Shown here: positions 27,464 through 45,371 of the stretch, piece by piece
How positions within the stretch are numbered: position 1 is the stretch's first letter
Layout: the number at the start of each line of letters is the position of its first letter
Sequence record: LC727695.1
Reading direction: 5' to 3' (one strand)
DNA length: 64,000 nucleotides
The notes under the pieces: generated by a model
Database searches by the model: none
The model's input: only the letters and a program-made list of their open reading frames with translations
What the model was told of the DNA's origin: nothing
Program-made: the position numbers and the translations under genes

Positions 27464-28804
<1,341 letters not shown>

Positions 28805-28979
28805 TTAATCCTCATAATTAGAGCGCGATGGGTTTCCATCTATAAAATCAGTCTGTTCTAGTTGTGTTAAAATAAAAAGTCTGGTATTATGAGCTTTACG
28901 TAATACCCTTGTAACAGTCTATTGATAGAAATGCCAATACTGGCTTTTATGGGTAGGCATAGTACTAACAGAGGTCATC

Positions 28980-29270
28980 ATGCTCGGTTTGACTATTAAA
29001 GCCTTGCTCTTCGTTTGGCCATTCCTTAAGAGGGCTATCTTTGGTGATAGAACAATTAAGGAAGTGTTGCTGGAAAACAAACATGTCACGGCAATGTTAA
29101 TCCTAGTTGTAATATTACTAGGTACCTTATTCATAGTGACTAGTGAGTTGAAGTCAGTTAAAGCAAGCAACTGGGCCGTTAAAGCCGAAATGGATCGACT
29201 CAAGAAAATGACGCCTGAGAAGGCTGAAATGCTTGAGCGCCGCCGTCGTTTAAATGACTTGCTAAAGTAA
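28980..29270 (+). CDS. Membrane protein with a C-terminal coiled coil, 96 aa
   Basis: Transmembrane segment TAMLILVVILLGTLFIVTS; GAGG RBS. Confidence 0.7.
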   Translation: MLGLTIKALLFVWPFLKRAIFGDRTIKEVLLENKHVTAMLILVVILLGTLFIVTSELKSVKASNWAVKAEMDRLKKMTPEKAEMLERRRRLNDLLK

Positions 29271-29290
29271 GTACCAAATTGGTGGATCAC

Positions 29291-29692
29291 ATGTCAAGAA
29301 AGTTCTTTCTAATACTCCTACCACTTATCAGTGGCTGTGTTTATACGCCACATGAGTACCACACGCACAACACGACTGTGGTCCAATATGAGCACTCCTC
29401 TTCTACAGATGATCATACATCTGTTGTTACAACTAAAGAAGAGGTAATACAAAAAGTTCTGCCTACACCTAAAAAATATAGTAAGGATACTAGTAAGAAG
29501 TGTATGGTTTTCGAACTACCAAGAAAGAAACCGGTACCGCCAACACCGATTATTACAGAGTTTATAGAAACTCCGGAACAAATCGATATCTTGTTGACTG
29601 ACTATATAAAAGAATTAAAGTCACATATTGTATCTGAGCGCGCTAAAATTGAGCAAGCATATGAAGAATGGCGTGCAAAGTGTGATGAGTAA
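29291..29692 (+). CDS. Lipoprotein, o-spanin-like architecture, 133 aa
   Basis: Signal peptide II MSRKFFLILLPLISG-C; Pro-rich stretch; C-terminal helix ending KCDE. Confidence 0.7.
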   Translation: MSRKFFLILLPLISGCVYTPHEYHTHNTTVVQYEHSSSTDDHTSVVTTKEEVIQKVLPTPKKYSKDTSKKCMVFELPRKKPVPPTPIITEFIETPEQIDILLTDYIKELKSHIVSERAKIEQAYEEWRAKCDE

Positions 29693-29747: not shown

Positions 29748-31196
29748 ATGTCAGACGGTATGGTTTTATACACTGACGGATCATTCCGACAGGGTAAAGC
29801 TGGTTGGGGTATTCATGGTTATACCTATGAAAATGTTGCAATGAAATCTAAAGCAGCCACCAAACAGCAACCAACAGCTAAGGGATACTTAGATGTAGGT
29901 GCAGATGAGACATGCACTGTTTTAAATTATATTGATGCATTTGGTAGTGTAACTAATAACCCTACTAATAATACAGGTGAGCTAACCGCTGCAATTGAGG
30001 CTTTCAAAATAGCTCATGAAGCAGATGCTCCTAGACTAACGATGCTCATGGATAGTGAATACGTTAGAAAAGGTATGACCGCATATTTACCCAAATGGAT
30101 TAAGTCTAATTGGATTAAATCAGACGGCACGCCGGTAGCAAACCAGGACCTATGGAAACAGATGGTCGAACTAAAAGCTAAATGGGAAGAAACTAATAAA
30201 CCATTAAGCATCCAATGGGTCCGTGGACATAACGGAGACATTGGTAATGAAAAAGCTGATGCTAACGCTAAGCTTGGTTCGGGACAGAATAATGATAAGC
30301 CAGTGATGGTTTCGGTTAAAGGCGAGGAAATTAACAAACTTAAAAAACAAGTTGTTAATCCACTTATCCTCGAAAGTAGGTTACTCTTCGCCATTAACTC
30401 TGGAGAAGAACCAGATGGGTTCTATTACACCTATAACTTAGGTCGTATGCATAACTATGGTCATAAACCAAAAGACACTGCTAAAGATAAATTAGCTAAA
30501 GCTGATTTAATTTTAGGGCGTCGTATCTCTGAAGCAACCTTCAGTGTATATAAGGCAAATGAACCAGATGAGTATCTCCAGTTACTAATTAATATGCATA
30601 CAGAAGCACTGGGTACTGAAAATCCAGAACTGGGTATCATCAATTTGGCAAACGCATATCGTGCAACCATTCGACAGAAAATTGAATCCATGGGGCTACC
30701 TGCTCTAGTCGTATGGAAAGATATCAATGTTTTGTCGACGCCAACAGATGAACTCATTAGTCGGACTCTTAATCCACCACGTATGGCAAATGATGCTGTA
30801 GCTACATTTAATGTTATGCGCAGTCGTCTTGAAGATTACTTGGCTGGTAAACTTGGAGAGTCGGTTGGTATTATTGATATTACCGAGCACTTCTTCGAGG
30901 AAGTCGCAAAGGGTAAGAAAGTTGGCTATCAACTACTTAAGACGATTACATCTAATACAGGCTTTGTAGAAGTTCCGATCACATTTAAAGATCGTAAGAT
31001 AAAATTAAAGCTTGTATTAAATATCGATATTCCAAGTAGAAACCAATTAGCTCGTATTGGAGCTAATAAAGTTAAAATGGAAATTCTTGTAGTAGCTGAA
31101 GGCCCATATTCTTATTCATATTCAATTGTGTTCGTGACGGATGATGGTTCAGCTATCTATCAATCACCCTATACACAATTTATTCTCCCAAAATAG
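29748..31196 (+). CDS. rnhA: Ribonuclease HI with a long C-terminal extension (gp155-like)
   Basis: YTDGS, NNTGEL, DSEYV, NQDLW and WVRGH..NEKAD motifs. Confidence 0.9.
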   Translation: MSDGMVLYTDGSFRQGKAGWGIHGYTYENVAMKSKAATKQQPTAKGYLDVGADETCTVLNYIDAFGSVTNNPTNNTGELTAAIEAFKIAHEADAPRLTMLMDSEYVRKGMTAYLPKWIKSNWIKSDGTPVANQDLWKQMVELKAKWEETNKPLSIQWVRGHNGDIGNEKADANAKLGSGQNNDKPVMVSVKGEEINKLKKQVVNPLILESRLLFAINSGEEPDGFYYTYNLGRMHNYGHKPKDTAKDKLAKADLILGRRISEATFSVYKANEPDEYLQLLINMHTEALGTENPELGIINLANAYRATIRQKIESMGLPALVVWKDINVLSTPTDELISRTLNPPRMANDAVATFNVMRSRLEDYLAGKLGESVGIIDITEHFFEEVAKGKKVGYQLLKTITSNTGFVEVPITFKDRKIKLKLVLNIDIPSRNQLARIGANKVKMEILVVAEGPYSYSYSIVFVTDDGSAIYQSPYTQFILPK

Positions 31197-31206
31197 TGGG
31201 TATTCC

Positions 31207-31626
31207 ATGAACCTTATTAGCAGATTCAAAAAGTCGGTTAAGAATGGTTTCAGGGCAATTTGGATTAAGCTCTGGGACTATGCTGATCCCGAACTAAAGC
31301 GGATGTGCGTCATGGCGTCACTGTACTCCGTTATAGTACAGTGTAAGACAAATGAGTGTGAAAAGATCTCTCATTTGAATTCTAACATGAAACTAGTACG
31401 CGATGAAGCTGCCTTACGACTCCCAATTCATTATGGGCCGTACGTATGGAAAGGCGTGATAGCAATCGATAAGATTGATAAAGCAGATCTAACCACTGAT
31501 CAATTTTTCATGAGGCTTATTCGTAAGACTCCGTGTTGGATGAAATATGCTGATGATGCAACTTTTTTAAAGGATTTGAAAACTCTCTTTAAATTAAGTT
31601 TACATGAGAAGTGTATTCCAAATTGA
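31207..31626 (+). CDS. Hypothetical protein, 139 aa
   Basis: Start MNLISRF at 31207, just after the RNase H stop. Confidence 0.65.
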   Translation: MNLISRFKKSVKNGFRAIWIKLWDYADPELKRMCVMASLYSVIVQCKTNECEKISHLNSNMKLVRDEAALRLPIHYGPYVWKGVIAIDKIDKADLTTDQFFMRLIRKTPCWMKYADDATFLKDLKTLFKLSLHEKCIPN

Positions 31627-44247: not shown

Positions 44248-44643
44248 TTATTGCATAAGCATCTTTATTAATTCAAAGGTACCTTGCACAATAGTCTTTA
44301 ACACATTGGCACTTTCTTCTGACATAGGTGCACCAGATAAAACTACCATAGTAGATACTGATGCCCCAATAAGAGTAACGCCACCAGCTAATACCAATAC
44401 CGCATTACGGTAAGAATCTTTAGCCTTCACTTCAGCAATTTCCCGGCTGAGAATTTTATATTGAAGATCTGAATCGGTAATAGCATAAATTAGACTAAGT
44501 ACTTCCTCACCAGTTATACTTAGATTTATACGTTGTTCCTTTTCCAATACACTATTCAAATAGGTACGTATCTTCTTTCCATAGTCTTTAGAAGAAGATA
44601 AAGGATTACCATCGATCTCAATCAGAACGTCCTCTAGGGTCAT
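44248..44643 (-). CDS. Candidate holin / membrane protein, 131 aa
   Basis: Start MTLEDV at 44643 with GGAG RBS; hydrophobic AVLVLAGGVTLIGASVSTMVVLSG; lies between the spanins and the endolysin. Confidence 0.5.
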   Translation of the reverse strand: MTLEDVLIEIDGNPLSSSKDYGKKIRTYLNSVLEKEQRINLSITGEEVLSLIYAITDSDLQYKILSREIAEVKAKDSYRNAVLVLAGGVTLIGASVSTMVVLSGAPMSEESANVLKTIVQGTFELIKMLMQ

Positions 44644-44980
44644 GACTATTCTCCAAATTACGTTGACGTTCGTTCCATTCACGCAATTTGTCTACTTGGA
44701 TATTACATAGTCCAAGTGCATCAGTTTGTAAAAGCCAATGTTCGGTCATAAGTAAGAAACGTGCTTCATTCTCATCAGTAACCCCAACAGCTTTATATCT
44801 ATCTAATGCATTGATGATCTCATTAGCTGTAGGTGGGGCTTCCACATCGCAAGGGAGAAGTAAACTACTTGGGATTGCAACTGGTATTTTCACGGGAGGC
44901 GGCACAGTAGTGCTCGTACATCCGTTTAGCAATAGCATTAATAGACTTATTAATGTTATCTTTTTTTGTGTCAGTTTCAT
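44618..44980 (-). CDS. o-spanin (Rz1-like outer-membrane lipoprotein), 120 aa
   Basis: Internal ATG at 44980: MKLTQKKITLISLLMLLLNG-C; PPPVKIP, LLLPC and LGLCN; overlaps the i-spanin 3-prime end. Confidence 0.8.
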   Translation of the reverse strand: MKLTQKKITLISLLMLLLNGCTSTTVPPPVKIPVAIPSSLLLPCDVEAPPTANEIINALDRYKAVGVTDENEARFLLMTEHWLLQTDALGLCNIQVDKLREWNERQRNLENSHDPRGRSD

Positions 44981-45371
44981 GTTTAATCTCAGTAGTGGTG
45001 CTTTCCCCATTAGTTGTTTTAGCTTTAACCTCAGGCCATACAGGTGGAGTATATCCACGACCTGATAAACTAATGTACTCATCAATCACCTCAGTGCGTG
45101 ATTGCGCCTGCTCTTTTTGTATCTCTTTCTTTTTAGTAATTAGTTCAGCTTGAATTTTATCGGAGATACGATCTGATTCAATCCTAACCTTTTCTGCCGC
45201 TTCATAAGATTTAATTTTTCCAATTAAATCTGTAGAGCGAACAAGTTCCGTCTCATAACTATTTTTGTAATATATGATACCAATTAAGGCACCTATCAGA
45301 ATAACTAATAGTAACCATATATGCAATGGCACGCTACCAATTATTTTTCGTATACCTGCTAATAGGAACAT
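44865..45371 (-). CDS. i-spanin (Rz-like), 168 aa
   Basis: N-terminal transmembrane segment IWLLLVILIGALIGIIYY, periplasmic coiled coil, two C-terminal Cys. Confidence 0.75.
   Translation of the reverse strand: MFLLAGIRKIIGSVPLHIWLLLVILIGALIGIIYYKNSYETELVRSTDLIGKIKSYEAAEKVRIESDRISDKIQAELITKKKEIQKEQAQSRTEVIDEYISLSGRGYTPPVWPEVKAKTTNGESTTTEIKHETDTKKDNINKSINAIAKRMYEHYCAASRENTSCNPK

Follow-up and report, generated by a model that had tools for sequence, protein, structure and literature searches.

A conserved inner-membrane protein and lipoprotein pair of phiKZ-type phages, predicted to span the periplasm and distinct from the lysis spanin

The stretch of DNA analysed here, 64,000 nucleotides of sequence record LC727695.1 (the window), carries at positions 28,980 to 29,692 two small neighbouring genes, homologues of PHIKZ156.1 and PHIKZ156 of the Pseudomonas phage phiKZ. 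Their products, the inner-membrane anchor gp156.1 and the lipoprotein gp156, are tentatively proposed to form a periplasm-spanning complex that is separate from the lysis spanin of the phage and acts as a non-lytic tether, as an organiser or as a relay of the state of the envelope. An initial annotation, made from the letters of the window, had described a membrane protein of 96 amino acids (aa) directly followed by a lipoprotein, and both open reading frames (ORFs; 28980-29270 and 29279-29692, + strand) are confirmed. The proposal draws on the conservation of the pair across nucleus-forming phages, a natural fusion of the two proteins, a joint loss of the lipoprotein and of the part of the anchor thought to hold it, and a pattern of constraint that is strongest on the cytoplasmic side of the inner membrane. 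Taken together, the pair is real, conserved, spanin-like in its predicted span of the envelope, distinct from the proven spanin, and probably non-lytic in its role.

A syntenic pair of nucleus-forming phages

As judged from its sequence, the source of the window is a phiKZ-type Pseudomonas jumbo phage, the 3.5 kb around the pair matching Pseudomonas phage PA7 at 100% and phiKZ at 99.5% identity. Searches with tblastn found both genes adjacent to each other in PhiPA3 (gp180/179), 201phi2-1 (gp242/241), PS119XW, Phabio, Noxifer, Psa21 and others, with identities of 35-56% for the anchor in most of these phages (29% in Phabio) and of 29-37% for the lipoprotein. A word-based homologue search returned only nine relatives of gp156.1 and two of gp156; the wider family appeared in a hidden Markov model search, in which the gp156.1 profile, run against 1.8 billion representative proteins, collected 117 clusters (E<1e-3), whose proteins are 44-211 aa long and share about the first 75 residues. 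In about 21 of 25 distinct related loci, the anchor gene adjoins the lipoprotein gene or overlaps it slightly, and the order of gp157 on one side and anchor, lipoprotein, RNase H and gp154 on the other persists in distant Chimalliviridae, even where gp157 has fallen to about 30% identity. Because this adjacency goes together with residues of the lipoprotein that stay invariant at 15-32% identity, the pair is more than a chance arrangement, and homology identifies it as a syntenic module of the whole family, found in almost all nucleus-forming relatives. The expectation of the initial annotation that two spanin-like systems in one phage would be unusual needs revising accordingly, the module coexisting with a true spanin in both phiKZ and 201phi2-1.

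Full-length matches were obtained to the families phrog_14813 (anchor residues 1-96, E 1.2e-43) and phrog_15897 (lipoprotein residues 1-133, E 2.2e-64), both tagged 'unknown function', and searches of Pfam, NCBIfam and PDB sequences gave nothing significant for gp156.1 or gp156. These blank searches are uninformative on spanin membership, since the proven phiKZ spanins gp141 and gp141.1 also match nothing significant.

Predicted architecture of the two proteins

Residues 36-54 are the only strongly hydrophobic segment of gp156.1 (Kyte-Doolittle 2.8), and the best 19-residue hydropathy window, scoring 2.2-2.9, lies at the same position in all 13 aligned homologues. It is predicted to be a single-pass inner-membrane protein of N-in/C-out topology, with an N-terminal module in the cytoplasm and a charged tail of about 42 residues, ending R-R-x-x-L-x-x-L-L-K, in the periplasm. 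This orientation is favoured because the charge bias is family-wide, the net charge of the N side averaging +3.2 and being positive in 114 of 117 family representatives against a mean of +0.2 for the tail, and because one homologue (locus L031) carries a 45-residue basic insert between its W-P-F motif and the membrane segment. The topology check proposed in the initial annotation thus comes out in favour of a periplasmic rather than a cytoplasmic tail. In the alignments, conservation is highest in residues 1-35, where W13-P14-F15 and N33 vary little, if at all, across the family; the N-terminal segment is amphipathic and moderately hydrophobic, and the AlphaFold2 (AF2) model of a homologue has helices at 2-18 and 23-29. 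The tail ranges from 11 to 158 residues in the family, usually with a short amphipathic motif at its end, and R87, L91, L95 and K96 are conserved among close relatives. Of the description of gp156.1 as a transmembrane and coiled-coil protein, the membrane segment held and the long coiled coil did not, the tail consisting of two short helices with a break at a proline.

Two other assignments of gp156.1 were considered and rejected. A class II holin or pinholin, which would have two membrane segments, both termini inside and a charged tail in the cytoplasm, is at odds with the periplasmic tail predicted both by the charge bias and by the fusion of the tail to a lipoprotein-derived, Cys-paired domain, and membership of the FtsL/FtsB (DivIC) group falls below the cut-offs (20.8 bits against 22.9 for PF04999, 17.4 against 42.45 for TIGR02209). 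The sub-threshold FtsL/DivIC-like matches belong to long relatives only and cover the membrane segment and coiled coil; the phiKZ protein has no such match. On the opposite strand, a 123-aa ORF rich in Ser and Arg (window 28919-29290, - strand) covers gp156.1 completely in antisense; two genes are annotated at this place in several phiKZ-like records, the antisense one being in all likelihood just a shadow ORF.

The gp156 frame encodes 137 aa from TTG 29279, the start used in the phiKZ RefSeq record, or 133 aa from ATG 29291, the start used for OMKO1, and the ATG, with a GGTGGA Shine-Dalgarno sequence just upstream, is the likelier of the two. From the ATG, the protein begins M-S-R-K, and its signal peptide of 15 residues includes two basic ones and a hydrophobic core. 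The lipobox noted in the initial annotation bears scrutiny: L-I-S-G-C satisfies the PROSITE rule, and its Cys16 is invariant in 20 homologues. It is textbook knowledge that the residues after the lipobox Cys govern the sorting of a lipoprotein, and those of gp156, V-Y-T, contain no known inner-membrane retention signal; gp156 is predicted to be acylated at Cys16 and sorted to the outer membrane. The PA7 protein record (BFVD I7DNW8) has 104 aa at 100% identity, its annotated start evidently lying downstream, with the loss of signal peptide and lipobox.

Behind the lipobox, the linker (residues 17-70) varies in length and is unalignable among homologues. The C-terminal domain is marked by C-x-x-F/Y-x-L/M-P, a Pro-rich extended strand and a helix of 38 residues with W/Y-x-x-x-C at its end, and the AF2 model, computed with 20 homologues, leaves residues 1-70 disordered and forms residues 71-133 into the Pro-rich strand followed by a helix at 95-132. 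The initial annotation had read a Pro-rich linker and a helical C-terminus with a Cys, and that helix indeed ends in Cys131. Among the 20 homologues (15-32% identity), Cys16, Cys71, P77 and Cys131 are invariant and P83 and P86 nearly so, and a Cys71-Cys131 disulfide is probable from this pattern. A Foldseek search of the model against PDB gave no match at E <= 0.001; a structural search of BFVD returned 'lipoprotein' entries of Psa21, Phabio, Noxifer and Ralstonia phage RP12 and, more weakly, one of the Erwinia phage Kwan (E 1.9).

Natural variants and the predicted contact in the periplasm

One locus lies on a 208-kb IMG/VR contig (IMGVR_UViG_3300020048_003360; locus L028, 3498-4010) and encodes a 170-aa fusion in which the N-terminus and membrane helix of the anchor (E 3e-20 to an anchor homologue) are joined to the C-terminal domain of the lipoprotein (E 6e-11). 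The fusion protein has neither signal peptide nor lipobox, and the lipoprotein domain takes the place of the C-terminal motif of the anchor; AF2 models this domain with a predicted local distance difference test score (pLDDT) of 91-98. The contig holds no separate lipoprotein gene and no second copy of the domain. It is the sole fusion among the loci examined, and none occurs among the 117 family representatives. A complementary case is the complete 307-kb genome behind locus L016, in which no gp156-like gene was found and the anchor, 86 aa long, lacks the C-terminal motif. Since the fusion brings the two domains into one chain and this genome has lost lipoprotein and motif together, an interaction in the periplasm is predicted: the two proteins probably meet there, and the C-terminal motif of the anchor would dock the C-terminal domain of the lipoprotein.

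A third variant is found in Xanthomonas phage Xoo-sp14, where the syntenic position (L005:2501-3203) holds an anchor of 183 aa that combines the W-P-F module with a long coiled coil and a Pro-rich end, and where the complete genome has no gp156-like lipoprotein gene. An annotated 47-aa antisense gene of this phage, Xoosp14_152, overlaps the start of the RNase H gene and looks spurious. The outer-membrane anchor is thus not kept in all members of the family, and the three variants suggest the anchor as the core of the module and the outer-membrane link as a usual, not an obligatory, part of it.

Transcription and transposon insertions

Timing of expression, which the initial annotation had proposed as a check, was read from the 15-min columns of a published RNA-seq table, in which the pair is transcribed. 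In the control, 156.1 has 894, 156 has 608, 155 has 2,975 and 154 has 10,697 reads per kilobase per million (RPKM), and when ChmA or the non-virion RNA polymerase is knocked down, the values for 156.1 and 156 stay the same, with 155 down by about 30% and 154 by about 60%. Because the knockdowns leave the pair unaffected, it is transcribed by 15 min independently of the phage nucleus; the RPKM values and the knockdown pattern suggest that an internal (middle) promoter, positioned downstream of where 156 begins, probably supplies the extra transcription of 155 and 154. In the literature, 156 and 156.1 were found mentioned only in connection with their transcript, which 155 has been reported to share with 154, 156 and 156.1, gp155 being essential and needed for maturation of the nucleus for a reason other than its nuclease activity (PMC12571901).

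In transposon insertion sequencing (Tn-seq) of phiKZ, the filtered and end-trimmed data hold no insertion in 156, 156.1, 155, 154 or 157 and 19 sites in the neighbouring gp158 (PMC12676376). At the density of gp158, about 8 sites would be expected in 156 and about 6 in 156.1 by our own arithmetic, and both genes are likely required for phiKZ. The raw table lists 4,631 reads at 6 sites for 156.1, all of them lost on trimming (PMC12676376), so these insertions lie within the first or last 29 bp of the gene, its outer 10%; as one such end site carries thousands of reads, insertion upstream of 155 need not be lethal. The authors of the data set have documented polar artefacts at other places in it (PMC12676376). 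The available part of an antisense-oligomer target list has neither 156 nor 156.1 among its targets. The spanin genes 141 and 141.1 have 11 and 8 raw Tn-seq reads, and their apparent essentiality could stem from polar effects on holin gene 142, which lies downstream; the transcription starts reported in the lysis region are upstream of 139, 143 and 144. This possible polarity means that the Tn-seq data leave room for redundancy between the two envelope pairs.

A proposed trans-envelope complex

In the mechanism proposed here, gp156.1 would enter the inner membrane with its 35-residue W-P-F module in the cytoplasm and its short helical tail in the periplasm, and gp156 would be exported, receive its acyl modification at Cys16 and end up in the inner leaflet of the outer membrane. 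Its disordered linker of about 55 residues would let the 63-residue C-terminal domain reach the anchor. This domain, a Pro-rich strand running along a long helix and probably stapled by Cys71 and Cys131, would then bind the C-terminal motif of the anchor, as adjacency, one natural fusion and one co-loss suggest, and the putative complex would have its genes transcribed already at 15 min after infection. Because the cytoplasmic part is the most constrained and some lineages lack an outer-membrane anchor, such a complex would fix or regulate something at the inner membrane rather than carry out the final rupture of the outer membrane. A bolder version is doubtful, namely that the pair is an indispensable family-wide module and represents a new class of phage trans-envelope complex, with the W-P-F module serving as a docking site for procapsid assembly or as a sensor of lysis timing.

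Bacterial envelopes offer parallels in architecture only: in RcsF-IgaA and LpoB-PBP1B, too, a lipid anchor and a long disordered linker carry a small C-terminal domain that contacts an inner-membrane partner, and the contact domain of RcsF is stabilised by a disulfide. No match of gp156 to known bacterial lipoproteins of the RcsF or LpoB type was found in the sequence searches or in the Foldseek search of PDB. Resemblance to T4 gp40, the membrane-associated head initiator, and to T4 Imm was considered and rejected, the sequences having no common architecture.

Several points weigh against a non-lytic complex of this kind. The fusion is known from a single locus, and a role as tether, organiser or relay has one kind of evidence in its favour, the conservation pattern. 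The empty gene bodies in the Tn-seq data may reflect polarity on the essential gp155. The literature search found no paper describing the pair and no experiment on either protein; 156 and 156.1 are absent from the study of phiKZ lysis (PMC12894885) and from the main text of the Tn-seq paper (PMC12676376), and 'gp156' occurs in the Chimalliviridae core-genome paper only as a gene number of another phage. The architecture of the pair, moreover, fits that of a 'separated' two-component spanin, and a language-model search (ESM Atlas) places gp156 nearest to clusters of the T4-spanin family PF26831 (0.90, 191 shared features).

Is the pair a second spanin?

These last points lead to the explanation that the pair is a second spanin of the separated T4 style, which would bridge and fuse the membranes after degradation of the cell wall, acting as a reserve for gp141/141.1 or else representing the family's ancestral spanin. 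We consider this unlikely, though much in the layout speaks for it. As in two-component spanins, where the gene of the o-spanin is embedded, overlapping or immediately downstream, a bitopic N-in/C-out protein is directly followed by a lipoprotein with a Pro-rich segment and a conserved Cys. gp156 has by prediction the lipobox of an o-spanin, and gp156.1 has by prediction the single-pass N-in/C-out topology and helical periplasmic domain of an i-spanin; its tail, at 42 residues, is short, and catalogued i-spanins include periplasmic domains of 45-55 residues (2018 spanin census, supplementary file 3). The T4 pair PseT.3/PseT.2 shares with gp156.1/156 the non-overlapping order of anchor and lipoprotein, the small sizes, a lipoprotein C-terminal helix with a Cys and a position away from holin and endolysin, the T4 spanin genes lying far from t and e among early and middle genes. 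PseT.3, however, lacks a conserved cytoplasmic module, and gp156 lacks the central beta segment and the invariant Trp/Pro pattern of the T4 family: the invariant residues of PF26831-type proteins (two Pro, Val, Ser, Arg and Trp) and their V-x-x-I-D-G...V-G-M segment have no counterpart in the gp156 alignment.

Alignments of T4-type spanins were built for profile-profile comparison. Against seven T4-type o-spanins, hhalign gave the gp156 family a probability of 58.8% (E 9e-5) over 21 columns of the helix before the last Cys, a value at noise level, given that the unrelated true o-spanin gp141.1, used as a control, reaches 51% against the T4 alignment through its signal peptide alone; the anchor scored 22.8% against its T4-type counterparts.

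The window also holds the proven spanin. The classic Rz/Rz1 pair that the initial annotation recognised at 44618-45371 is gp141/141.1, which fully complements the lambda RzamRz1am lysogen, and a plasmid carrying genes 141-144 alone, with gp142 as holin and without gp156.1/156, causes sharp and full lysis of E. coli and P. aeruginosa PAO1 (Young laboratory, PMC12894885). The 2018 spanin census from the same laboratory lists 141/141.1 for phiKZ, and ORF226 with an unannotated overlapping lipoprotein for 201phi2-1, so that in two phages with both systems it chose the other pair and left gp156.1/156 unlisted. The two phiKZ pairs resemble each other in having a protein with an N-terminal membrane segment, an adjoining lipoprotein gene, Pro-rich segments and periplasmic Cys residues, but they have no sequence similarity (E 14, with an alignment in the signal peptide only). 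Genes 141 and 141.1 overlap by 116 nt within the lysis cassette, whereas 156.1 and 156 are separated, stand beside RNase H and encode a conserved cytoplasmic module. Lambda Rz/Rz1 likewise combines a type II inner-membrane subunit with a lipoprotein, periplasmic Cys residues and a presumed contact through the C-termini, but Rz1 is embedded in Rz, and the periplasmic domain of Rz has about 130 residues and two coiled coils against about 42 residues in gp156.1 (textbook; Kongari 2018, PMC6139136).

A spanin would also be expected to show a different pattern of conservation. The gp156.1 family conserves the cytoplasmic N-terminus and lets the periplasmic tail vary, one lineage has a fusion that lacks an outer-membrane anchor, and the lipoprotein is missing from two complete genomes; spanin families, to our knowledge, always require the outer-membrane anchor. 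A redundant spanin is weakened by the sufficiency of 141-144, the conservation on the cytoplasmic side, the lineages without an outer-membrane anchor and transcription at 15 min. Of the two readings left open in the initial annotation, an alternative spanin or a tether for something other than lysis, the trans-envelope pair common to both is thus upheld by the fusion and the co-loss, and the redundant spanin has lost ground.

Other explanations

A trans-envelope sensor or blocker of secondary infection, which would stop DNA entry or vesicle formation by phiKZ-like phages, or would signal superinfection to delay triggering of the holin in a manner like lysis inhibition, is improbable. Transcription at 15 min and independently of the nucleus would suit it, and the conserved cytoplasmic module could relay a signal; the lipoprotein domain is conserved across hosts, as befits a phage-encoded target more than a host receptor. 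Lysis by phiKZ is delayed at high multiplicity, with a putative periplasmic sensor and with gp143 as cytoplasmic holin regulator (PMC12894885). Exclusion genes, however, are usually accessory and fast-evolving, whereas this pair is syntenic across the family; no Tn-seq insertion was found, although exclusion would be dispensable under plaque and lysate conditions; and there is neither similarity to T4 Imm nor an experimental hint.

That the two are mere neighbours acting separately, for instance a small membrane protein affecting host division or a membrane protease beside an unrelated lipoprotein, is very improbable: the anchor without lipoprotein in two complete genomes and the FtsL/DivIC-like matches of long family members would agree with it, but those matches stay below curated cut-offs and cover only membrane segment and coiled coil, and the adjacency kept across deep divergence in about 21 of 25 loci, the natural fusion and the joint loss of motif and lipoprotein stand against it. 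The probability left over by the favoured complex and these three alternatives belongs to other explanations.

Gene layout of the locus

The + strand of the window corresponds to the - strand of phiKZ. The RefSeq record of phiKZ names the two ORFs PHIKZ156.1 (96 aa) and PHIKZ156 (137 aa), flanked by the divergent head gene gp157 on one side and by the co-oriented gp155 RNase H and gp154 on the other; other records label both ORFs as hypothetical proteins. The co-orientation with RNase H given in the initial annotation is borne out by the gene at 29748-31196 (Table 1). The gap between gp156.1 and gp156 in the window is 8-20 nt, depending on the start of gp156. The divergent intergenic region next to gp157 presumably holds the promoter of the 156.1-156-155-154 unit; a scan of the locus for sigma-70 promoters and terminators stayed at the level of shuffled sequence, the sigma-70 model being inapplicable to the phiKZ polymerases. 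For gp154, the longest ORF begins at ATG 31141, within the end of gp155, and encodes 161 aa, the RefSeq start gives 139 aa, and OMKO1 has 104 aa.

Table 1. Features of the gp156.1/156 locus and of the proven spanin genes in the window
Feature	Position	Strand	Basis or remarks
gp157/gp156.1 divergent intergenic region	28802..28979		gp157 on -, gp156.1 on +; ORF map and phiKZ annotation
gp156.1 homologue, predicted inner-membrane anchor, 96 aa	28980..29270	+	ORF; PHROG phrog_14813
gp156.1 residues 1-35, predicted cytoplasm-side module	28980..29084	+	amphipathic helix with conserved Lys7, W-P-F-L-K-R motif, short second helix
gp156.1 residues 36-54, predicted transmembrane helix	29085..29141	+	hydropathy
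gp156.1 residues 55-96, predicted periplasmic tail, proposed gp156 docking site	29142..29267	+	two short helices, break at Pro79
gp156 homologue, predicted outer-membrane lipoprotein, 133 aa	29291..29692	+	ATG 29291; PHROG phrog_15897
gp156 signal peptide and lipobox L-I-S-G-C	29291..29338	+	predicted acylated Cys16, codon 29336-29338
gp156 residues 17-70, Ser/Thr/His-rich low-complexity linker, predicted disordered	29339..29500	+	AF2 pLDDT 46-65, without secondary structure
gp156 residues 71-133, conserved C-terminal domain	29501..29689	+	AF2 pLDDT 94-98
gp155 RNase H-like protein, operon mate	29748..31196	+	Pfam RNase_H, 1.5e-25
gp154, operon mate	31207..31626	+	phiKZ annotation (RefSeq start)
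gp141.1 o-spanin (comparison)	44618-44980	-	120 codons, lipobox L-N-G-C; 116-nt overlap with gp141
gp141 i-spanin (comparison)	44865-45371	-	together with gp141.1 complements lambda RzamRz1am

Implications for phiKZ-like phages

An inner-membrane protein gene with a lipoprotein gene downstream is insufficient grounds for annotating a spanin, as this pair illustrates. Its conservation reaches from Pseudomonas phages as far as those of Ralstonia, and probably includes Erwinia phages. phiKZ serves as the model for nucleus-forming phages, and the definition of its lysis cassette is very recent; with a second spanin-like pair, the question arises of what activity at the envelope precedes lysis. Should the pair be a spanin after all, phiKZ-like phages would carry two such systems, and the cassette published as 'necessary and sufficient' would tell only part of the story. 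Should it not be one, as is tentatively favoured here, it would offer a handle on a step at the membrane, for example sites of capsid assembly, exclusion or the timing of lysis.

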